Origin: Ophelia neglecta
Lineage: Eukaryota
Assembly: GCA_965285935.1 (NCBI GenBank)
Contig: OZ260665.1
Location: 30,690,001 to 30,754,000, forward strand
Length of the DNA stretch: 64,000 nt
Reading direction: 5' to 3'
The notes under the pieces are model-generated. The model was given only the letters and a program-made list of their open reading frames with translations, searched no databases and was not told the origin of the DNA. The position numbers and the translations under genes were made by a program. How positions within the stretch are numbered: the stretch's first letter is position 1; every line of letters starts with the position of its first letter. Of this stretch, positions 41,507-62,239 are shown one piece after another.

Positions 41507-41652
41507 AAACACTGCAAGGCCCACACGAGAAGCGACTATTGAAGGAACTGCTGCAAAACCGAGGATATAACAAACTTGAGAGGCCCATTGCCAACGAAAG
41601 CGAGGCGCTCACAGTCACGTTTGGACTTGTACTACAACAAATCATCGATGTG
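41507..41652 (+). CDS. CHRNA7: nAChR alpha7-like exon 2
   Basis: tttcag|...|gtaata; (E)[48 protein letters not shown]. Confidence 0.93.
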
Positions 41653-44600: not shown

Positions 44601-47600
44601 AAAGAAAGTAAATTATCTATTTATCTAAATGAAGAAGAAAATGTTCTGGCTTTGTGCAGCCTCCCTCCCCTCAGCAAAACTTTTAGTAACATCATGTTCA
44701 TGAGTGAAAGGATACGAATCTCTTATCAAAGGATTCAACGTGTGATGAGAAAGCATTTCTCTTTCTTACATATATGAAACAATATCCTGACGCAACTTTA
44801 AATCGGCATGCATACGTCAGCAAACATGTTAGAGAATTCCCCGATGGAAATAGACCGGTAGTTTGACCGATGTCTTCTAGATGTTGTCCTTACTGGTCTT
44901 TATTTAGAATCCACACTGGTTTGACATCTGACTTACGAAGGACTACAACGCGATACCTTTTCCAACATCCAGTGAAAGCTTACAAAGCTTTAGTAAGCAG
45001 TGCCGATAGATCTTAGATAGTGCATGTTTTACAACCTGCTATGAACTGGTATTAATATGGGCACTTGTGCATTTCCGGTTGCCTGATCATGAAGATCCAC
45101 CCCAGAGGCTATTTAATTGTTGGTTGCAAGGAAAGTAAGATGATTAGAAATAATGTCTTGAATTGGTTTTTGAATCAAGTATTGAGTTGACTAATTTATC
45201 ACACTCTTTTCTTTTCTAGGACGAAAAGAATCAAATTTTAACTTCCAATATATGGTTAAACATGGTAAGTGCACTAGTGTGTCCTCATCATTGAGCGACA
45301 CCTGATATAGGTGTTCAACTAAGTAGGGCGCGCGCTTAATTGAGTCTCGTTTTGTCTCCACAGGACGAAAAGAACCAAATTCTCAGTACAAATCTGTGGT
45401 TAAATTTGGTAAGTCCCCAAAATGATAAAGGAGGATAAAATAAGTTGAAACTTATAAAGGTGCTGTATATACGGTAGCCCATCGTGCGAAATTTGTAAGG
45501 GTAAAGCTCCAACAATTACGCGCGCCTCGTGGACGGCATCATTTTCGTTACACCCCAAGGTGAGTGAATCTATTTTATCTACCAATGTATTGCTTTGTGT
45601 AATACATCAAACGAAAGTTAGGAAATTCGTTGTCAATCCTGTGTACTGGCTTGATTTATCGAAATAGCTATTTGTGAACAATTCTCGAGCAACATCAAGC
45701 GTGGGCGATAGTAGGAGAAATAACACCTTAATTTCCCGTTGATGTCGGCTTGGTGCACTTTTCGAAGCTGAAACTTAGTAGACAGTACCTACTGATAACT
45801 GTTAACATATCCATGGTATCTGCTCAATTTAGAATGATGCGGTTTTTTTATCCTAGCCGTTCAAATAAGTTTCCGATGCGCGTGTATGTAAGGGCACGGC
45901 GCGCCTGTAAGAAAGGGCACTAGCCGAGTAAAGGGAACGTAAAAGTAAGGCAACGCAATTTCTGTGATTGTTGCTGTTCAGTTCCTGGCTCCTGGAAAGT
46001 GGTTCTTTTGCGATCTTTTACGTACAAATGTTCGACCTTTGCCAAAAAGTCACTGATTTAAGGCCATGTTTTCCATAGAATCACAATAAAACTCATTTTC
46101 ATTGATAAATTTATGACTGCTTGTATTTCAGTTTAAAAACTACGTTTTATATATATCTATATACATGTATTTACCTGTAGCTATTGCTAATTCTCTGACT
46201 ATAAACTTATATTTTTATAGGTATGGACCCTTTGCCCGACATGAACAGGGCTTACCATTGTGGCTATAGTCCACATGGGCCAACAACATTCAAAGATCTA
46301 GCTTCACATCTCATTGAGAGTCATGGCACAAAACCCATGAAAATCCGCGAGTTTGGGATTCACCCTAAAACGGGGCAGAGTGTCATGATTTCATAAATCA
46401 TAACTGTAAACGGTTCGAATATTGTGCCTCTGGCACCTGGCTCGAATTATCGATTCCTGAACAAACTTTAATGTTAATACTCTCGAGTATATATAAGTCT
46501 TGTTAATCAATTGTACCAGTAAAATGCTTTCTCGAAATGACCTGTCTTCTTCATATATGCGCATTCAACATCTATAATGTGAACACAATATGCGTTTTTA
46601 CGAAGGGAAGTACACTGCACCTGTCAGTGATGGTGGTCTGTGATTTGATAATACATTTTAAAAGCTTGTACCTAATGATTCTAAATATATTTTTAAGCAC
46701 CATTTAATAAGGCATATTAGCCTTCATCATATCACATCAATCAGTAAATAACTCAATTAAGGTAAAAAAAACGGAGTCAATGATCAAAAATATGTCTCGA
46801 AGAACGTGGTATGCTGTATACCAGACATCCTTGGTTTGATTAATCACCAATAAGACAAAAGTATAAGGCTTAAACTTCTACTAGAGTAGCTATCGAACAA
46901 TAAAATACAGATGAAGTTGTGAATTAAAAAGTTTAAAGTCAACATAAACGAGAAACGCAACTTGCAATATAGACAATTCTGCCGTTGTAAACTTAAAACT
47001 TGATCATAGGGCCTCTGGTTTCCGATTCCTTGCAGGCACGCTTTTTAGTGCACAGCAGCCATAACAATTAGGGTAACATTTTATGTATATATGCGTCTAT
47101 GAATATATCTATAAATATATATGACTCTCGTTCCTAGTAATGACACTTAAATACATTCCATTGTTATGTGTGCTTTTTTTTTATGTTTTTTGAGACCTTG
47201 TGGCCAGTTGAACACTTCGTGACAATCCTCAAATGGGCAGCGAAACTGTTTGAGGCTGTGTTTACCAATGTCATGCTTCCGTGGATATTCCTTGGAACTG
47301 AACTTTTTCCCACATTTGGAACAAGGATGAATTTCTTTGTTTGGATTTTTGTGGCAAATCTTCCGATGATTACACACAGATGACCTCGTTGCAAACTTTT
47401 TATTGCAAAATTGGCATGAGTGCATGAGTATTTCATGGTGAGCATTGGTATGGTCCGTTAGTTGGCACTGGAACGCAAACGTTTTATCACATAGTTTACA
47501 CCTCAAACCCGCAGATGAATGTACAGTGTCCATATGGGCTTGTAAACCCTGTTTGCTAGCATACCCTTTCCCACAGGAACTGCAGAGGTAACTTCTTGAA

Positions 47601-50600: not shown

Positions 50601-53600
50601 CTGACAATGTCATTTTACTTCAGTAATTGGAATACACTCACAACTAAATGTGTTTCAACACAGTCTGCAATCTGACCAAAACCAACTCTTCACAGTCAAA
50701 GTGACCATAACACCATTTTCAAATCCTCTGGCTCCGCGGGATGGAAAGACAAAAGTGAGACCACAAACGTCAATTTAAATCAACCTCGGAGGCACTTTAA
50801 TGGTCCTAAATAACTTCCAACCTGTTATCAGACAGGCATTTATACTGTTTTTGAGACACTGGTTATGACGGTTGTCAACCACTTTTGAGTTATAGAGGAA
50901 TTTATGAGATGGGTTGATCTTTTTGGTTATGCTTTTTTCCCAAAACTTATTCACAAAGAGCTAAACCGTTTCATGTAATGATGATAGAGAATTGAAAGAA
51001 ACTATCCCATAATAATTACGAATCTTACCTCAAATTATTGACATTTTCGTTAGCATAATAAATTTTTCCCTTCGTAGCAGAGGTAGGGTACCCTACGCAG
51101 ATCTCGCCCCATCCAATCTCGGCCGTTAGACGTTTCTGAAATAAGTCTAACAATTATAATTAAATTAAATTTGGAAGTGTTCCATTGTAATTGGTTGTAA
51201 TGCGCCCAGTCTGTATGATAATTTGTAATACGTCCTGTCTGTAGAAGTCCCGTGACTCTATCTTGTCTTGTTATGTGTTCTCCTAAAAAAAGGAGCCTCC
51301 TCGTGCCCTTATGGATAAGGCGTCTGATTTTGTATCCAAAGGTCAAGTGTTTAAGTCTTGCCATAACCATTTGTTTTCTCTTCGTTTAAAACTATAATAC
51401 CAAATGGCATCAATTGTACTATTCTAAATGCCTACACAAGGGAAAGGTAGCTGCACGGAGTTCATAAGGCAGGTACTAGTTTAATTTAGATGCATCCCTT
51501 ATGATCTAAATCTTAAATGCCGGTCACTCATTACACGGTATGCATATGTAGTAAAACGTACGAACATATTTGCGACAAAATGTTCGTTTCGATCGCACAC
51601 GGTTGACTATCCAAGTGAGGGCTTTCCCAAAATTCCTAAATTTAAGGGCCAATCACATCGCATGCAATAAATACGTCACACAGCCGTCATTAAGCCTCAT
51701 TTCTGTTTACCTGGAAAGCTGCCGGCCGGAAACGCTTAACGGCAGAGGCTGATGGCAGCAAATAATTTGTAGAGGACATTACCTCCGCTACAAAGGGAAA
51801 ATAACGGGCGTCTATGATGTAATTTAAATATGTTGCTAGGATAAATATGAAAAAGGGAGGACCTATTTGATTTAAAACGGAAAGGATCCCCCTCCCTGAA
51901 ACATGTTTCCTTCAAGTAACGTCCAAGTCACTTTATCGCTTTATCTGATACAAAATGAACCCAAGTATTAATCACGTAAATCCACTTATCAATTACAACA
52001 ACCATGCTCAAACTTAGGATTCTACTATTTTAAAGATCATCCACAGGCATATATATTTTTCGAACCAAGTTTTTCAAACAATCCCAGACATATTCTGTTT
52101 GAGAATGTCAAGTTTTTCTCTTCTAGCCATTGACGAAAACAGGACGAGACTCAATTTAGTATACACAGCTATAGCCTACTATCTCTCTACTGGAAGTTTA
52201 CAATTTACATTCTCTACATTTTATAAGTAACGCCTATTTTGATGAACACACGATTTAACATAATTTCTCTTCCAATCTTTCATACCAGTTCACCCATCCT
52301 TATTTACATTTGGTTATTTTAATTTATATTATTCGTCATTAAGTGGTTTATTAATACTTTGAATCTTTGAACCTTTATATTATTCAATCTCTGGAAATAG
52401 AAAATCTATCGTGGAATTAAAATATAATACTTTTTTTTAATGCTTTCATAAATACGTGTTTATTTGAAACATAAATAACAATGAAATATTTCATTTTAAC
52501 GTTTCCTAGGTTTGGAATGATTACAACTTGGTTTGGAATGAATCAGAGTACGGTGGTATTAAAAGCATACGAATACCACCGTTAATTATTTGGAAACCAG
52601 ATATTCTGATGTATAACAGGTAAGAACTGCGTTCAATATTCACTACATGTTGAATACGACACAATACTCATACCAAAAAAATTCTACTTTATATAATTAT
52701 GCTAAAGTAATATGTTCACAATTATCATAGGTGCGCATCCTTTTTCTGTGTTATTCATAAAATAAAATTCCCTCTCTTTGTTCACAATAAGTAAATATTA
52801 AAACCTATAAGCTGGTACTATGTTAAAGCACATATTGCGAATGTCGAATTTCTTACCATTCATGACTGCTATTTCAACGTCTCTACCAGTGCTGATGAGG
52901 ACATTGATAGTACATATCCTGCAAACATCGTTGTGAGTTCCGACGGCAGCTGCCTCTGGGTACCTCCGGGCCTCTTTCTGAGTACATGTAAAATCGACAT
53001 CACGTGGTTTCCGTTTGACGACCAGCAGTGTAAGATGAAGTTTGGGTCATGGACGTACGATGGTTTGTCGATCAATCTCACGTTGCAAGACGAGGCTGGT
53101 GGTGATATTTCAGACTTCATGCCTAACGGAGAATGGGAACTCGTGGGTAAGATTGGTCGTAGGAGAAAGACAGAAATTCCATCTTAATTAAAGAATATCA
53201 CGAACAGTAATATTTAGTTGAATCAAGGTTGTATAGGTCATGCTATATTAACCAGTACTTGGCAGGTAGTTTAATGTGACATTTCATAGAAATAGATACG
53301 ATAATAATTCACGTCCGAGTGTGCCCAAACCTCTGAATCTAGTGAAGTGATTCGAAGAAATGAAAACTTAAGCAAGTGCCTAAGTCCTTACATTGTTCAA
53401 ATAAAGATTAATATAAGCGATTCTGCTGGCCGACAGTAAATTGTTGCATTTGATCTGGAAATAAAATCGTTGTGAAAGTAAAATTAATTTGAAACCTTTC
53501 GAAAAATGTGACACTTTGCATATATGGTTGGGAACAGGAAGTTGTCAAGAGAATTCTTTCAAACGGTGTTTGCTACTGCTTTGCAAGTTATTCAAACTGA

Positions 53601-56600
53601 ATGTTTATCCATCACTATGTCTATTTAAAAAACGCATATTTCCCAAAATGCACAGTTTCAAGAGTCCTTCCTCTGTGCACGGGTATACTTGCACTGGTAC
53701 ATTAGTCATTTTAGTCATTGTCTTTAGTATTTTACTTACATGTATATTGCCTATCCTTATACTCGCAGTTGACTATTCAATCAACCTCTTTATATGATAT
53801 TCGAAAGCTGATACTATATGTTTCTCAATCCATTGACCACACCGACGATAAGGTATAAAGAGGAACTTGACGAAGGTCCTTGATGGAACTCCATGTGTCG
53901 TTACTATCTGATGAAGCTTCCTTACGTCCTCTATCTATCAGTCCTTTGTGCCTTTTTCATTTTCTGTGATTCTGAAGACTTTATGGGAAAAGTACAATAA
54001 CAATAAAGACGTCCTTGTGGATGATTTTGTATTTTGTGTAGGGTTTCTAAAAGCGTTTTTCCTTACCTAATTATAGGCTGAGGGCATTTTTAACACTTGC
54101 CGTACCCAGTTAAAGAGTCGATGCTTTGACATTACCTGCAGTACGGCCAAGGGTCGGATCATTTGGCAGGCCTTCAGTAAACAAGAATTTTAAGCAAATA
54201 ATCTGGCGTTAAATTTTTTTGGATTCCAGATTTACTAAGTCGTGTTTTTCCCTTGAAGTCTTAGCAATTATAGAATGTGATTCAAACTATAACAATAAAT
54301 ATTTGTTTTATTAGTCTCTCTTTTTCAATGTTAGATTACTTCTGATCGTCACTGTCGTATGTATGAGCATATTTCGAAGGCCTTTACTAAGGCAATGAAC
54401 CAATTCGGGTAGTTCGAATGTTTGTATTGCATGGTACACTGTTATTTTGATTTTTGGTTCACACAATGATTAAGCTGCTTTTATATGTTCAATGCTTCCT
54501 CTAAGTTTAAAATAAACCTTTATAGAGTCTTTTTGTTCAATGACAGCATATGACAATACAAAGATGCAGACGTAATTGACGCTTATTTTGCCCTGCTTGC
54601 GTATCTTTGCAGGTGCACCGGTCAAGAGGAATGTTGTCCAATATGAGTGTTGTCCCGAGCAATATATCGATGTAACATTTACAATTAAAATACGCCGACG
54701 AGTTTTGTACTACTTGTCAAATTTGGTTGTCCCCTGTGTCATGATGTCGATCCTCTCGATGGGGGTGTTCTATATGCCTCCCGATGCAGGCGAAAAGGTC
54801 ACCTGCGGTAGGTTTCCATACCTTCATTATCTCTATTTCACCACAGCCCTGCTTAATTTTCGTTTATTTTCTGTTTTCATGGTATAGGTGTGCCCGCAAA
54901 GCGAAGTGTCGTACAGTACGACTGCTGCCCTGAGCATTACATAGACATTACTTTTACAATCCACATACGCAGGAGAACCCTATATTACGGGTTTAACTTG
55001 ATTATCCCCTGTGTTTTGATATCTTCCATGGCACTACTGACCTTCACATTACCCCCGGACGCGGGCGAGAAGATCTCGTTAGGTAGGTGTGAACTATCGC
55101 GACACGAGCACGTGGTCCTCCTTCCCCCCTTTTGCACATTTTTATTCGCTTTTTTGTCGTATGCACCGGACCAACATTCTAGATGTTCCTCTATGTCGCT
55201 CTGAGGCTATCTCTTCTTTGGAAACTGACCTCTGAACTTTGATTTTGACTTAGTTTTTTAAGTAACGTTGATGTTCAGCGTTTTAATAAATAAAACATTT
55301 GGTTCAGGTATACAATGTCAATTTTTTTCAGCTGTCGGATTTTATTTTTCCATGACAAAATAATTTTCGTTTCGATCGATTTCCGAGACATCGGTGAAGG
55401 GTGACGCGAAGAAGATTAGTTACAGCTCTATAAGAATATTTATTAATACACATTATAACATATACATATAATTGTTTATACGGCTATTTAACGACATTCC
55501 ATCAGTTACTGAAAATTTTCATTCCATTTGCCATAACTTTTTAATCCATAAAGATAACAATTTCAAATAAAATACATAAGCTTTCTCGTCTATCAAACTT
55601 TCTTACGGGGTTAATCGGTTTAAAATTTATCAGGAGACACCAGAGATACGTTCCCTTAAAGAGGTGAGGGGTCTCAAAATTTGAGGATTTTCCGTAAAAA
55701 TGATTGTAAAGAATGTAAAAGCACGGTTACAACAGTTACAAATGTTTAAAATTGAGTGCAAAAATCTTGACCGGGAGCGCAAACCGGAGAAAGTCGCGTG
55801 TGTTTGGCGCATGCGCAGTAAACAGGAACCAGAACTGCTCCCAAGGATCCCGCGCTCGAAAATCGTGAGTGAATATCTTTATTTTTAACAATATTAAGGA
55901 GTTTTATCCAAAACCGCGTTACAATGCAATGTAACAAGTGTTCGCGATTCACGTAGATACTTAATTTATATTTATATTTTTGCATTTCTGGTAAATCGCA
56001 AAGCATGAGTAAATTAGAAAAGAAAAAAGTATAAACAAAACACTAAAGACAGCGCAGATCTCCAGTTTAGCATTGATCTATTATTGTAAGAGATATGTCA
56101 CTGAAATGTTATCTCCATCATTTTATTGTTTTCCTGCATTAGTTTCCAATGATAATGAACCTCAACCGGAAGAGATTGTCGTTGGCATTGACTTCATGGA
56201 CCAACCGAGAGGTCATGGTAAGTCTGTAGTGAATGCTACGTGATTTCCGGTGATTTTATGTTTCGGTTACAAATATATTAACTAGGCTACAAATGGATAA
56301 ATGTTAAGATTCCGATCAAACTTTAATTCACTTTACAGTGTCAGAAGGTGAAAAGACAAGTCACAGTAGGTGAAAAGACAAGTCAAACAGATCAATTTTC
56401 AAGTGATCCTGGCTGAAGCCTCTTGTGTTAATTTGTTGGGCGTTCCAGTGCGTTCCGCTGCATTCTGATGCGTTCCTGTATTCAGTGAGAGCAGATTCCT
56501 ACCACCATACCGAAGACGATGTGGAGGCTGCACAGGATATTGAGGAGATAGAGTTGAAGGTCCAACCACCCACAGCTTTTGCCTTTCTTTCTCCTAGACT

Positions 56601-59600
56601 TACTGTTTTTCTTTGACTACAGACGGATATTCTATTCCTCATTGCTTCCCTTTTAGCCTTAGTTTTCATAGAAAAATGAAACGTTTGCTTTAATGTTAAT
56701 AGTACTCTTTTAATGCTAGTAATACAAGTCACAATAAAGATTATTACAATATTTACAGCTTTCATTTATTTTTTAATGTTCGACATCATGATGTTTCTAA
56801 AATTTAGTTCCAAACTCCAGCCTTATTCTTCTTAAAGCACGACCCCTCATCTGTGCCCACTTGAATCCCCACCATCCGAACGCGAAGCGTTGGGATCAAC
56901 ATTAAAATTAAATTCACTTCGTCAATAAAGTTCACCCTGCTTTATTAAAGTTTCAAAAACACACACATGCACAGTAATATTCAGGGAATTTAAAAACCGT
57001 CTAGTAATTGATAGCATAGATGTATATACATCTCGGTTCAACATGATAGTTATCCAGTTTTGTAAACGAGAAACTTTCAAACACCATTAAAACAAGTCCT
57101 TAACGAACACACAATACGGGACCTATAAAGTTTGTTGTAATTACTTTATAATTGATCCGGGTTAACACACTGTTAAATAATAGATAGCGAGTTTCTGCCT
57201 CCATTGAAGAAACCCTGAGACAGTAATGCGCATGCCCGTTGACTTTTGTTTCCGTAGAGTACTCGGTTCCTTCCGATGAGTGTACTGATTTGTGAACTTT
57301 GTGCCTATGGTGACCTACGGTTGTTTGGTGATTTGTAACGGATTTGTTAACAATATGTAACATTTTGCACATAAGTAACCTTTCTGATTAGTAATCTACC
57401 ACTTACCAATTATAACAGCACGGTATTGAGAGTGATAAAGCGTTTGGATTACATGTTCTTCCATGGAACACAGTTATTACAAGCATATAATGTTTACTTG
57501 CTCAGTCATTGACATATCTCGTTACAAATAAATTTGTACCCTTTGCAAAATTTTGATGTCAAATTTTTGCCTTTTAATTTCACTCGTACAAGTCGAAATA
57601 CATGTATATAAAACATAATGTGCCACTTATGGGTTATTCAGATCGCAGTTGTAACACAGGAACACAGAGATAGCACAATAAATTTACCCACAACTCAATT
57701 TTACAATGTATTTATAACTTACTTGTAACGATACAAATAGCAACAATTCTTTTTGTAATTCTCAATTCTTAAACTCCGAAAAATGTAAAAATCCCGACGA
57801 GAGCTTATTCCATTCACCGGTTTACTCAGCTCGAATGGTGCTTTCAGAAAATATAGTGCGTATAGTGCCCCGTGAGAGGCCTATGAAAATGACGTACGGA
57901 ATACCGTGAAATAGCCGTATATGTTTTTGATAAGGACACATATGTATATTGATGTTAAAGACCAATACTCCAGGCGTCGAATGCGTCTCTGCTAATAAAT
58001 TCCGTTCCTTGTTCGATGAATGTCTTACCCGCATGGATTAATTAATCCCATATGTATGTAAACAATGTTATATCTAGGTTCATTAGTCTTAAAACCATTG
58101 CATGCACCTTGTACATTAACATGTAGTGTAGTAAGTGGGCTGTATATTATTGCCATTCTACCTGTTGTGCAGAATTTGTTAGCCGAAATATACTATTTAA
58201 ATAAATACTTGATATAATATATAAATTATATAATGGTCACAGTAAATCAAATAAATGAATGAACTTGTAAATTTGAATAATTAGCTGTTTATAGAGGGAC
58301 CGATAAACGTCATCGTTCACGTGACCGGTCAAATAAAAATAATTTTGATTTTAAACTGAACAGTATTATGACATGCTAATATTCTTGTCATAATGATGAC
58401 AATTGACCAGTTTCGTTTCTTAAAGTTTGCAATGACATTATCTAACGGTAATTGTTAACTAGTTCGAAAAGTTGTCGAAAAGGTTTCCTTTTGGCAAGCT
58501 TCAGCAATTGCTATACGATTAAGATATTTTCCATTGAGCAAGATATTAAATCATATGGAATCATTTTTCTTGCCATGCATACGATTTATTACCAATGGTT
58601 GAAGCTATAAATATATCATTGGTCATATTTTCGACTATTTCATTTTATTAATATTCTAACGAACACTAGCTTTGTTATTGTTGTATGGAATTCTGCTACT
58701 CATGTACCGACATGCGCTTTGCTCTTTTCAGGTGTCACTATACTGCTATCGCTTACTGTGTTTCTACTGTTGGTGGCAGAAACAATGCCCCCAACCTCGG
58801 ACGCGGTGCCCTTGATAGGTGAGACAAGGTCGAATTCTCCCGAGGCACTGCCCCACCAAAACCTAGAAAGTAGTCTGTAGCATGCGCCCATGAGAACAAA
58901 ATTATAGTTTACTGAGTGCGAGTGATTTTCTTGTAACTTAAAGGGAAATGGCTTATAGTTCAATATATGCAATTCAGAAAATACATTTCATTGAATATAG
59001 TCTTGTATTTTTTATAATGAGACATGTCTATGCAGTTCAGTTATGGTCCCAAGTGGCATTACACACTATCTAGTCATTGGTGAAACAATATCCGATATAT
59101 AACCCATGTGTCAAACTATACATGAAGTAAAACGGAAGAAAATTAATGGCATTTTCGATATTATATACTGTATAAAATACAAACATTGAATGAATCTGAA
59201 TACAACCCAATTTATTTGCACATTGACTATTCTAAGATAATTTATTAGTATTCATGGTCAGCATTATCGCGCTTATTTTAACTTTTGTATACAAATAATG
59301 CATGACGTAGCGAACGGGTAATTTCCACCTTGTTTGGACAATTGCTCACGTTTTTTATGAAGGTATGTGATACCTCTTTGTATACAAAATGACCTGGCTA
59401 TTGTCAATTTTCATTTAAAAAGGGTTTAAATTGAGTAAAGATCTATTTAATGTTTTTTTCTGAACCAGATTAATTTCTATTAAAACAATTTGAATGATGC
59501 AAATTTTGCATTTTTCGAGTATTGATATACCAGTTAAATGGATGGTGACCCATCGTCATAACTTGAGACATGAGTTTCACATTTGGTTATTTCTGAGCTG

Positions 59601-62239
59601 GTCCATTTCCCTTTAATACGTGTGCATGCATGTGCTGCATGAACGTTTTCTATCTTTCTAATAGAATGGAGTGGTCAGAAGCACTGTTTACATGGACAAT
59701 AGAAATAAATTGAAGTATTTTCGGAGACAATGGTCTTTAAACAGAGGTATACTGATTTATTTGACAAGCACGAACCGCTTAAATCTCTCGAAAGCTGGAC
59801 TCATAATTCCACCACGAACCTGCATACGATTGTCGTTTATTATAAGAATTGGATTCAGGAAAGGCCGCATAAGATCTTTCGCAATTTCAGCTCCTGTAAT
59901 CAATGCTATTCGAGCACAGGTTCGTGTTGGAAGTATATTTATGCTATTGATAGATGTATGTCATTCGTAATTGCCAAAAAGTGACCTCTTGAAATTTTAC
60001 CGACCTGAAGCGAACATTAATCACATCATTGAGACACTTTTACCAAAATTAAACCTGAAAGTATCAACGAGATTGTACCTTCTTCGACGAAATTCTTTAT
60101 GAAGCGCTTATATATTTTTATCCTATGCGGGTTTGATTGCTTCTTTGAACACAAATTGAACGTTTCTTGAAAGTCTCTCAATTTATTAGAATATTTATAA
60201 CCTACTAACATTTGATGTTCTTAATATGGTTACAAATGTTTATCGTCATAACGAGAATGGTCGAACTAGCATGATGTGTTTGTTTGTACAGAATCCTTCA
60301 TATTCTTCTTTGTCTTGTGCAATAGTATCACTGTTTTTCTCTCTAACTAATGTTAGTGTGGCACAATTAGGATGGTTGACAAAATATATTTGCACGCTTA
60401 CCATCAGATATGAAAAACAGATCACTTGCCATTGTGCCCAGGCTTCATGGATGATTATGGCGAATAATAGTGTTCCTTCAGCTCTGGAGTGTCGCGATAT
60501 GATGTGTACAGAATAGCTGATTCTCGGAGTGATTCATGCAATTTGCGCAGCTAGCAAAGCTAACCTTACCCCTGCCAAAATATGTCACCTTCCCCTGCCA
60601 GTGTGGCTTATTACAACTTTTTGTGGGACACTGTTTGCTTGTTAAGCCACTTGCTTTACAAAAGCAGCTAAATAGCTTCATAATTCAAATGGTGATTGAT
60701 ACATAATGTATATTTGAAGCTTCAGAGGCATCGCATGATGCCGCCAGCAAACTCACTGATTGCTCTCCAGATCACGCTACGCCCTAGTGATTAACATGAC
60801 CTTAAATTACGCTAAATGCGCAAAATGTAGTTCTTATGGTCGTTCCTTTACCAACTGTAATTCCATCATCGGTATTGATGCGGCAGGGGCATTGTTTGCC
60901 TTCAACAGTGCAGACACTCCTTTGCCAGCAAACATTTGCAAGGAAACATTCAAAAGGGAGTTGTTGGCCAAAAGCCCGCCCGACAGCTTCATGGTAAGCG
61001 TGCAAAGGCAAATTAATGTCCCACTCTCTTCATGTAATAAACAAAGATATATGGTGAGTTCGTTTTAGATATTAGTTTCTAGATTAAACCTATAGATATA
61101 CAATCCTCAATATTATTTGACATGTTTTCTTATAATAAATGTCTTGTTCCTCTGCTGCATAGAACGATGCATCGTGATTCACTGCCCGACTGTAGTCTCG
61201 CATTTTGAACTACTTTATTTGTAAATTGAGTATTGTTTTTATTCAGTAGTATTTATTCTTATGGCAGATCATTATAAAAGAACACTCCAGCAAAACGCAA
61301 CACAACTGCCAGGCGATTGGATATGGATTTATCGTATTGTGATCATAAATGGTCAAGGCACTAACTCAGCCGAGTTACATACAATATTGTTACCATTTCA
61401 GGCATGTATTTTGCCTGTATCATGCTGATGTGTTCACTATCTGTGGTATTCACCGTATTGGTGTTAAATTATCACCATCGCACTCCGGATACCCACCAGA
61501 TGCCAAGATGGGTAAGTTGACTAAAATTGGTAGGCCGCTATACATATATATAAATCTTTCAAATATGTAGTCATATATTCCTGCTCACTGGTATTGCCGC
61601 ACTATTTGATGTATGATAAGGCGTCGTCGAACAATGTTACTAATATCCATATAGTTTTTTTTCTTTATCCAATATATGTTTTCGGTACTTTTCTTTATGA
61701 TTTTTTTTTCAATCCATTTGCCGACAAAATGTGTTTTCTAAATACAGGTAAAGAATGGAGTGTGTGAGTGGCTGGCGTGGATGTTACGGATGAGACGTCC
61801 GGGAAAGGAGTTCCCACAGAAGAAAGGTACGAAAATGAAAGATGTCGAACTGCGCGAAAGGTCTTCTAGGTCGTTGCTGGCAAATGTCCTTGACCTTGAC
61901 GACGACTTCCGGGGATCGGTGGGTAATCACACCAATCACAACTATTCCGGAGTTAAAATCCACAACGAGACTCGGTTAGGCAATATTGGGGGGATACCCG
62001 CAATGAACAGCATGACGTCAAGCTACGGAGGAACTGATAATCCTTTACTGCGCGACATATTAAAAGAACTGCGCTTTATGACTGAGAAAATGAAGAAGGA
62101 CGAAGAATTCCATGAACTGTGTAATGATTGGAAATTCGCTGCTATGGTTATAGATCGTCTGTGTCTTTGGGTGTTCACCATATTCACAGTAGTCTCAACC
62201 TTCGCCATTTTGTTTTCCGCTCCGCATGTCACGTCGTGA
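41507..62239 (+). CDS. CHRNA7: Nicotinic acetylcholine receptor alpha subunit, alpha7 group (multi-exon gene span; ~480 aa plus signal peptide)
   Basis: Exons join in frame at GT-AG sites: [18 protein letters not shown], Cys-loop [15 protein letters not shown], loop B WTY, vicinal CC in loop C, GEK-M2 [17 protein letters not shown]3, M4 [14 protein letters not shown]. Exon sizes 45/110/195/87/110 match those I recall for vertebrate CHRNA7. The symbol denotes alpha7-group homology, not proven one-to-one orthology. Confidence 0.93.
42530..43900 (+). repeat. Degenerate ~47-bp minisatellite in nAChR intron 2
   Basis: Many diverged copies of approximately ttcgagacaagctagttaccagttcctggttacctattcggttgaca. 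Confidence 0.75.
44158..44330 (-). repeat. Inverted block of the same ~47-bp minisatellite
   Basis: gtagcttgcctcgaatgtcaaccgaat and aggaactagtagccagtttaactcgaatgtc are reverse complements of the unit. Confidence 0.7.
44327..44760 (-). mobile_element. Decayed Penelope-like RT C-terminal (thumb) fragment
   Basis: [24 protein letters not shown]....[19 protein letters not shown] resembles the NFP.L.SNIP...Y.SQL.R.ARA..RN..L..KLL.QGY motif of Penelope-like elements as I recall it. Confidence 0.45.
45220..45264 (+). CDS. CHRNA7: nAChR alpha7-like exon 3a (alternative, loop D)
   Basis: ttttctag|45 nt|gtaagt; [15 protein letters not shown]. Confidence 0.93.
45364..45408 (+). CDS. CHRNA7: nAChR alpha7-like exon 3b (alternative, loop D)
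   Basis: ctccacag|45 nt|gtaagt; [15 protein letters not shown]. Confidence 0.93.
45470..46079 (+). repeat. Left terminal inverted repeat
   Basis: Reverse complement of 48053-48669; outer ~120 bp look identical, one 9-bp indel (ttgacagtc absent on the left), divergence increases inward. Confidence 0.95.
46223..46396 (+). pseudogene. Truncated ORF with one degenerate C2H2 finger (possible 5' remnant of the element's main gene)
   Basis: [57 protein letters not shown]; pattern YxCxx[S]x6FxxLxxHx4H with AGT where TGT would restore Cys; ATG lies 2 nt after a ttttatag acceptor. Confidence 0.45.
47147..47803 (-). pseudogene. Seven-finger C2H2 zinc-finger gene (218 codons) with one in-frame stop
   Basis: From the ATG at 47803: [40 protein letters not shown], then six further CxxC-x12-Hx3-4H fingers (the last has Cx4C spacing). 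TAA at 47726-47728 lies inside finger 1; the track ORF 47147-47716 is the downstream part. Confidence 0.85.
48053..48669 (-). repeat. Right terminal inverted repeat
   Basis: Reverse complement of 45470-46079. Confidence 0.95.
52510..52619 (+). CDS. CHRNA7: nAChR alpha7-like exon 4
   Basis: ttcctag|110 nt|gtaaga; [36 protein letters not shown](S), loop A. Confidence 0.95.
52890..53146 (+). CDS. CHRNA7: nAChR alpha7-like exon equivalent to vertebrate exons 5+6
   Basis: ctaccag|257 nt|gtaaga; [58 protein letters not shown]...NGEWELV(G). Confidence 0.95.
54613..54807 (+). CDS. CHRNA7: nAChR alpha7-like exon 7a (alternative; loop C + M1, divergent form)
   Basis: ctttgcag|195 nt|gtaggt; (G)[64 protein letters not shown]. 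Confidence 0.92.
54888..55082 (+). CDS. CHRNA7: nAChR alpha7-like exon 7b (alternative; loop C + M1, canonical alpha7-like form)
   Basis: ggtatag|195 nt|gtaggt; (G)[64 protein letters not shown]. Confidence 0.95.
58732..58818 (+). CDS. CHRNA7: nAChR alpha7-like exon 8 (M2)
   Basis: cttttcag|87 nt|gtgaga; (G)[28 protein letters not shown]. Confidence 0.96.
59700..61070 (-). mobile_element. Possible decayed LINE RT relic in intron 8
   Basis: Weak ordered minus-strand traces: CDASEAS (cf. LD.SKAF, ~60735) and [10 protein letters not shown] (cf. GVPQG.VLSP, ~60630). Confidence 0.25.
61402..61511 (+). CDS. CHRNA7: nAChR alpha7-like exon 9 (M3)
   Basis: catttcag|110 nt|gtaagt; (G)[36 protein letters not shown]. 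Confidence 0.95.
61748..62239 (+). CDS. CHRNA7: nAChR alpha7-like last coding exon (intracellular loop, MA helix, M4)
   Basis: aatacag|[19 protein letters not shown]...[22 protein letters not shown]...ILKELRFMT...[37 protein letters not shown]. Confidence 0.95.
   Translation, partial: VKNGVCEWLAWMLRMRRPGKEFPQKKGTKMKDVELRERSSRSLLANVLDLDDDFRGSVGNHTNHNYSGVKIHNETRLGNIGGIPAMNSMTSSYGGTDNPLLRDILKELRFMTEKMKKDEEFHELCNDWKFAAMVIDRLCLWVFTIFTVVSTFAILFSAPHVTS

Follow-up and report, generated by a model that had tools for sequence, protein, structure and literature searches.

Two tandem copies of the loop C/M1 exon in an alpha7-like nicotinic receptor gene of Ophelia neglecta: a probable pair of mutually exclusive exons

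Results

A duplicated exon 7 in an alpha7-like receptor gene

The window analysed here is a stretch of 64,000 nucleotides (nt) of the Ophelia neglecta genome (GenBank assembly GCA_965285935.1, contig OZ260665.1, positions 30,690,001 to 30,754,000), whose plus strand carries a gene for an alpha7-like nicotinic acetylcholine receptor (nAChR) subunit. Exon 7 of this gene is present in two adjacent copies, both on the plus strand. The upstream, divergent copy, exon 7a (54613-54807), codes for loop C (YECCPEQY), the pre-M1 arginines (RRR), the first transmembrane helix (M1), the M1-M2 linker and the beginning of M2 up to position 3' (GEKVTC). The downstream copy, exon 7b (54888-55082), is of the canonical alpha7 type and codes for loop C (YDCCPEHY), M1 and the motif GEKISL. 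Both are 195 nt long and of phase 1-1, have an open frame starting at the third base, and are bounded by AG and GT; the intron between them (54808-54887) measures 80 nt. Each acceptor is preceded by a pyrimidine tract (ending in gcag before 7a and in atag before 7b) and both donors read gtaggt. These neighbouring homologues thus agree in length and phase, and each has its own set of intact splice sites. This arrangement had been described, with the same coordinates, by a first-pass annotation made from the letters of the window, and all the motifs that it quoted for 7a and 7b were found in the sequence.

The products of the two exons are identical at 39 of 64 full codons, or at 40 of 65 positions when the shared split Gly codon is included, which is the count given by the first-pass annotation. 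Identity is unevenly spread, being higher in the extracellular part (20/27 residues) than in the remainder (19/37), which runs from the pre-M1 arginines through M1 and the linker to the end. At the DNA level 121 of 195 nt agree (62%), and the similarity detected by tblastn (E ~4e-28) is far above chance. The Pfam domain Neur_chan_memb (PF02932) is recognized above its cut-off in 7a alone (30 bits) as well as in 7b alone, and a search of the window returned exactly two copies of exon 7 and one match for exon 8.

The first-pass annotation had left room for an assembly artefact. Logan contigs that were assembled independently for three DNA runs of a single sample cover positions 52900-57601, and with them both copies, with 0-2 differences, so the duplication is genuine. 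That the pair stems from misassembly or from haplotype collapse is scarcely credible, since single contigs of all three runs cover the whole region, the copies share only 62% of their DNA, and a matching arrangement occurs in four other species, as described below.

Structure of the host gene and its genomic context

Exons were searched singly, one by one, and the gene was mapped on the plus strand from 41626 to 62239. Exon 2 ends at 41652. It is followed by two 45-nt exons coding for loop D, exon 3a (45220-45264) and exon 3b (45364-45408), each with AG and GT and separated by 99 nt, which form a second alternative-exon cluster in the same gene. Downstream lie exon 4 (52510-52619) and a constitutive exon that corresponds to a fusion of CHRNA7 exons 5 and 6 (52890-53146, hereafter exon 6); the latter codes for the Cys-loop, with 13 residues between the cysteines, ends in NGEWELV+G, and has its donor at 53147. 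The single exon 8 (58732-58818, 87 nt) codes for M2 from position 4' onwards and offers a common acceptor to 7a or 7b. Exon 9 (61402-61511) and exon 10 (61748-62236), with the stop codon at 62237-62239, complete the gene. Vertebrate CHRNA7 has exon sizes of 45, 110, 195, 87 and 110 nt, as does the gene in the window. The domain Neur_chan_LBD (PF02931) matches exon 5/6 with 86 bits, PF02932 is above its cut-off in exons 7a, 7b, 8 and 10 each, and the cation-channel signature at the base of M2 (-1' Glu and 0' Lys of GEK) is encoded by both 7a and 7b. Together with the match of both copies to human alpha7 described below, these features identify the gene as an alpha7-like nAChR subunit gene.

The 762-megabase genome contains more than 130 exon-7-like nAChR matches, some of them in dense arrays on contigs 7, 2 and 5; such a number fits the nAChR expansion reported in molluscs and other lophotrochozoans (PMC6896357). 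Of these matches, the one most similar to 7a is the adjacent 7b (63%), and those listed include no further tandem pair. A paralogue with a single exon 7 lies on contig 12. Repeated elements are present in the intron that separates 7b from exon 8 (at 55500-57900); many diverged contigs map there, and the depth of the DNA runs climbs from ~31 to 100-265.

Differences between the products of the two exons

To define what separates the two exon types, we compared 15 sequences of the 7a type with 15 of the 7b type. Twelve positions distinguish the types, ten of them in M1 (34, 38, 39, 42, 43, 44, 46, 48, 51 and 54) and two in M2 (63 and 64, that is 2' and 3'), while none of the twelve falls within residues 1-29, which include loop C. 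The loop C motif Y-x-C-C-P-E-x-Y is invariant in all 30 sequences; the residue before the first Cys (E/D in YxCC) and the one before the second Tyr (Q/H/E) vary inside both types. The first-pass annotation had proposed that the exon choice exchanges loop C and switches the agonist site, a view that these data do not sustain. The pre-M1 RRR, the Pro-Cys of M1, the -1' Glu and the 0' Lys are retained in 7a and 7b alike.

The type-specific positions of M1 recur with an i, i+3/4 rhythm, so that particular faces of the helix are involved. At the 2' ring (position 63) 7b has Ser and 7a has Thr, and at 3' (position 64) 7b has Leu and 7a has Cys. In the alignment to human alpha7, residue n of the query corresponds to chain residue n+177; position 48, which is Ser in 14 of the 15 7a sequences, matches alpha7 Ala225, and position 45 matches alpha7 Ser222. 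Ala225 and Ser222 are reported to belong to the transmembrane site of the modulator PNU-120596 (Young et al. 2008).

Exon 7b aligns end to end with residues 178-241 of human alpha7, its top match in the PDB (87 bits, against 62.9 for alpha3), in line with the canonical alpha7 type first ascribed to it. Exon 7a had been placed nearer to the heteromeric alpha3-type subunits. We rejected this placement on the scores, human alpha7 being the best solved relative of 7a as well (68 bits, against 59.5 for alpha3), and 7a is a relaxed exon of the alpha7 type.

Conservation and selection

Searching 1.84 billion representative proteins with 7a returned many open reading frames (ORFs) and gene models that contain two matched stretches, and the underlying DNA was fetched for several of these matches. 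A 7a-type exon lies upstream of a 7b-type exon in Capitella teleta (locus L015, KB312450.1) and in three further assemblies (L013, L016 and L017), and the same order is found in the ORF P0012. In these four loci both copies are exactly 195 nt long, of phase 1-1 and flanked by AG and GT, and the intron between them measures 150 nt in Capitella, 64 nt in L013, 75 nt in L016 and 54 nt in L017. With the window, both copies are thus kept as coding sequence at five loci. A maximum-likelihood tree was built from 61 exon-7 peptides. In it the 15 exons of the 7a type, which come from different assemblies, form one clade with support of 100/98, and the 7b-type sequences fall in an unresolved alpha7-like core.

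The 7b protein is 86-97% identical to the 7b of the four other species. Between species, the proportion of nonsynonymous differences (pN) is 0.03-0.12 for 7b and 0.18-0.24 for 7a, rising to 0.32-0.36 in the 7a pairs that involve the aberrant L017. The proportion of synonymous differences (pS) is 0.56-1.07 between species (at least 0.76 when L017 is left aside) and is saturated. The combination of saturated pS with low pN indicates that both exons are under purifying selection, 7b more strongly so; 7a evolves faster while still being constrained, and 7b is the conservative copy. The earlier proposal that 7a has been retained by selection and is not in decay is borne out by a pN far below the saturated pS and by the 15-member clade, and the check that it had recommended, of both exons in relatives, found the pair intact in Capitella teleta, L013, L016 and L017. 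Within species, 7a and 7b differ by a pS of 0.66-0.92, again saturated, which rules out recent gene conversion. Concerted evolution of the loop-C half was also considered and rejected: identity between 7a and 7b in this half within a species (0.59-0.78) is hardly higher than the value found between types across species (0.65), and synonymous sites are saturated.

Evidence of splicing

A trace of splicing comes from a sequencing run (X1) of a related organism, ~93% identical to the window in exon and intron alike, whose label as RNA is a guess. One contig of this run (208 nt, depth 15.9) covers 54618-54808, that is exon 7a, and carries an overhang of 17 nt, GGGAACTTGTGG+GTGTG. In the window the last 12 nt of exon 6 read GGGAACTCGTGG, with which the overhang agrees at 11 of 12 positions, the difference being one silent Leu change; such a match to the end of exon 6 has a chance of ~2 per million. 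The other five bases, GTGTG, are the start of 7a. The contig thus holds a spliced 6-to-7a junction, and this junction (53146 to 54613) is one that the first-pass annotation had proposed to look for. In this contig five of the seven changed codons listed are silent, and the contig ends at the 7a donor, without running into 7b. Splicing of 7a to exon 6 was thus seen once, in a relative. A second contig (161 nt, depth 4.6) runs through the 7a-7b intron into 7b and is either unspliced RNA or DNA. That 7b is used we infer from its near-invariance.

Public gene models add to this picture. In Macrostomum lignano, one model (P0156) joins a 7a-like exon directly to exon 8 and has no 7b copy. Other models place a 7a-like copy (RRRKLYYVFNL.., GEKVSF) in series with a 7b copy; P0010 and P0153 include both copies of exon 7, and P0153 also both copies of exon 8. 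The Capitella model CAPTEDRAFT_221893 (P0154) has both exon 3 and both exon 7 copies in series, which is most simply an annotation error. The double-copy models of Capitella and Macrostomum probably describe proteins that are not made.

Discussion

Our results suggest, with a probability that we put at roughly 0.8, that 7a and 7b are alternative exons of long standing, produced by tandem exon duplication in the alpha7-like gene of spiralian invertebrates, and that their use is very probably mutually exclusive; a single gene would then very probably give rise to two channel subunits. The spliceosome would join exon 6, whose donor follows 53146, to one of the two copies, and the chosen copy to exon 8 at 58732. 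The two subunits would have in common the extracellular domain, the loop-C pharmacophore, M2 from 4' on and M3-M4, and would differ on set faces of M1 and at 2' and 3' of M2. No change would be expected in agonist recognition; gating or desensitization, conductance at the cytoplasmic constriction, the transmembrane modulator pocket and/or the packing of helices between subunits may be altered, and the two isoforms may co-assemble.

Mutual exclusivity is the most likely arrangement. Inclusion of both exons would stay in frame and would double M1 and break the topology of the protein, so splicing itself must enforce the choice; as the frame is kept, nonsense-mediated decay could not police double inclusion. 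The best branch-point candidate in the window, TTAAT, is found ~49 nt downstream of the 7a donor, leaving 31 nt to the 7b acceptor. Across the five loci, the distance from this donor to candidates picked by motif is 17-25 nt in L013 and L017, 45-49 nt in L016 and the window, and 94 nt or more in Capitella. With introns of 54-80 nt in four of the five species and candidate branch points 17-49 nt from the donor, the data point to steric hindrance, which would be the likeliest mechanism in most species. As to RNA pairing, we found only short inverted repeats at chance level. Both acceptors are preceded by GCCCTGCTT and TAATT..CG.TTATTTT, with the order of the two motifs reversed from one acceptor to the other (54573-54601 and 54846-54870), and GCCCTGCT is also present 23 nt upstream of the Capitella 7a; these repeated motifs may be branch-site or regulatory sequence, or may have arisen by chance.

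Several observations weigh against this interpretation. At 150 nt the Capitella intron could itself be removed by splicing, which means that steric hindrance cannot account for exclusivity in general. The 7a of L017 is strongly diverged, having lost the Cys of M1 and changed the 0' Lys to Asn. A gene of Bulinus truncatus (L018, JAGDYQ010000002.1) has a single exon, of the 7b type, between exons 6 and 8; either the pair is not universal or this gene is a paralogue. The run records that we searched list no RNA run for Ophelia neglecta, and the support from RNA consists of one short contig of a relative, in a run whose RNA nature is a guess and from which an unspliced contig was obtained as well. 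None of the contigs shows a junction 7a-to-8, 6-to-7b or 7a-to-7b, and contigs cannot show absence. Finally, apart from the models of Capitella (with both copies) and Macrostomum, the databases yielded no full-length protein that includes a spliced 7a; this negative is weak, as the search was restricted to a region, used the Macrostomum and Capitella 7a parts, and ran on clusters at 90% identity that may hide isoforms. As to the two loci themselves, the L017 copy (L017:10077-10271) is still open and 195 nt long, with the motif GAGENVNC and a branch length of 2.0, and may be decaying in that lineage, and the public Bulinus model KAH9524882.1 ends in an out-of-order segment that resembles exons 3 and 4.

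Read the other way, the same observations would make 7a a relic pseudo-exon, skipped in nearly all transcripts and devoid of a function of its own. The nonsynonymous evolution of 7a is 2-7 times that of 7b, the L017 copy looks degenerate, a gastropod gene lacks the exon, and the search recovered no annotated full-length protein of mollusc or annelid type that has 7a without 7b; these points speak for a relic. We nevertheless regard this as quite improbable. Despite saturated synonymous sites, 7a has, as an unused copy could not have done, stayed open, 195 nt long and flanked by AG and GT, with all the residues that define the receptor, in at least 15 assemblies including Capitella, and the spliced 6-to-7a contig has 3.4 times the depth of the neighbouring unspliced one. 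Still less probable, in our view, is that both copies are normally included in tandem, giving a subunit with a repeated loop C-M1 module. The reading frame would allow it (195 nt each), gene models of Capitella (P0154), Macrostomum (P0010), Amphibalanus (P0005) and Armadillidium (P0006) contain both copies, and double inclusion of exons 3a and 3b has been reported for alpha6 of the tick and the silkworm (PMC13578988, PMC2045683). These models are automatic predictions, however, and the tick 3a+3b isoform is non-functional (PMC13578988). A second M1 would moreover invert the topology of M2-M4, and the X1 contig stops at the 7a donor and does not continue into 7b. Introns of 54-80 nt with candidate branch points at 17-49 nt, like the 21-nt spacer of an arthropod-type contig discussed below, are too short or marginal for splicing the two copies together. 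A pair of alternative exons thus remains our preferred reading.

Tandem copies of this exon also occur in arthropod-type sequences. Models of the barnacle Amphibalanus amphitrite (KAF0300447.1) and the isopod Armadillidium vulgare (KAL7640434.1) contain both copies of exon 7. At the isopod locus (L020:90380-98738, JAWIIT010000013.1), which is alpha6/7-like, the copies lie ~820 nt apart and exon 8 is doubled too, with exon-8-like matches at 96004-96087 and 98655-98738. An arthropod-type contig (L019:1846-2256, Logan SRR27257898) has tandem loop C/M1 exons with a GT..AG spacer of 21 nt, gtatgattcatataatttcag; this is below intron size, so these two copies cannot be spliced together. Two tandem copies are thus present in crustacean alpha6/7-like genes (barnacle, isopod and two arthropod-type contigs), one copy matching the M1 of the insect alpha7/alpha5 type (..LIASMAVLGF..GEKLSL) and the other partly resembling that of the insect alpha6 type (..GEKLTL). 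In approximately unbiased (AU) tests on 64 columns, grouping of the 7a clade with the first copies of Macrostomum (p = 0.18) or with the second copies of arthropods (p = 0.17) was not rejected; in the free tree the Macrostomum copies group with each other. One could imagine that the twin loop C/M1 exon dates back to ancestral protostomes, instead of being a spiralian novelty, and that spiralians still use it to make, from one gene, two channel types that possibly co-assemble. We consider such an early origin unlikely, though less so than the alternatives above; under it, the two forms of an old alternative exon may have come to reside in separate genes in insects.

Mutually exclusive exons are well known in the alpha7-like lineage. 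Insect alpha6 has exons 3a/3b and 8a/8b/8c (Grauso et al. 2002; PMC1919356, PMC6393475) and tick alpha6 an alternative exon 3 coding for loop D (PMC13578988). The gene in the window shares with them the alpha7-like lineage with the exon structure of vertebrate CHRNA7, the tandem duplication of exons of equal length and phase, and the 45-nt twin exon 3. It departs from insect alpha6 in its second cluster, which there is exon 8 (87 nt, part of M2) and here is exon 7, exon 8 being single. A duplicated exon 7 is not described in the alpha6 papers (PMC1919356, PMC6393475, PMC13578988). The "alternative exon 7" of Bombyx mori alpha8 (PMC2045683) is likewise a tandem-duplicated alternative nAChR exon with the same number, but it belongs to another gene and covers another segment (TM2-TM3), and its duplication is recent, with 86% identity and restricted to Lepidoptera. 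A survey of lophotrochozoan receptors does not mention alternative splicing (PMC6896357). Searches of full-text literature yielded no report of a duplicated loop C/M1 exon, in agreement with the first-pass annotation, which knew of none; subscription journals were outside the scope of this search, and a prior report is possible.

Other comparisons concern the exon itself and the mode of its exclusion. Exon 7 of vertebrate CHRNA7 has the same length of 195 nt, equal phase and the same coded segment; to our knowledge it is present in one copy in vertebrates and is constitutive, and 7a has no vertebrate counterpart. Exons 2 and 3 of alpha-tropomyosin are mutually exclusive through steric hindrance. 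The pair described here resembles them in its very short intron and in a candidate branch point near the upstream donor. It differs in that the 150-nt intron of Capitella does not fit.

Insect alpha6 is the target of spinosad, and tandem-duplicated alternative exons are its main route of diversification. Such exons have been known so far for loop D and M2, and the pair described here concerns loop C and M1. The gain is moderate, as the principle was already known and the functional effects are predicted ones. Public models that include both copies, in Capitella, Macrostomum, the barnacle and the isopod, are wrong and their proteins probably do not exist, so that inventories of spiralian and crustacean receptors undercount isoforms. 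A conserved switch of M1 and of 2'/3' that would hold the agonist site constant amounts to a natural experiment, one that bears on the part of M1 in alpha7-type gating, desensitization, transmembrane modulator binding and subunit packing.

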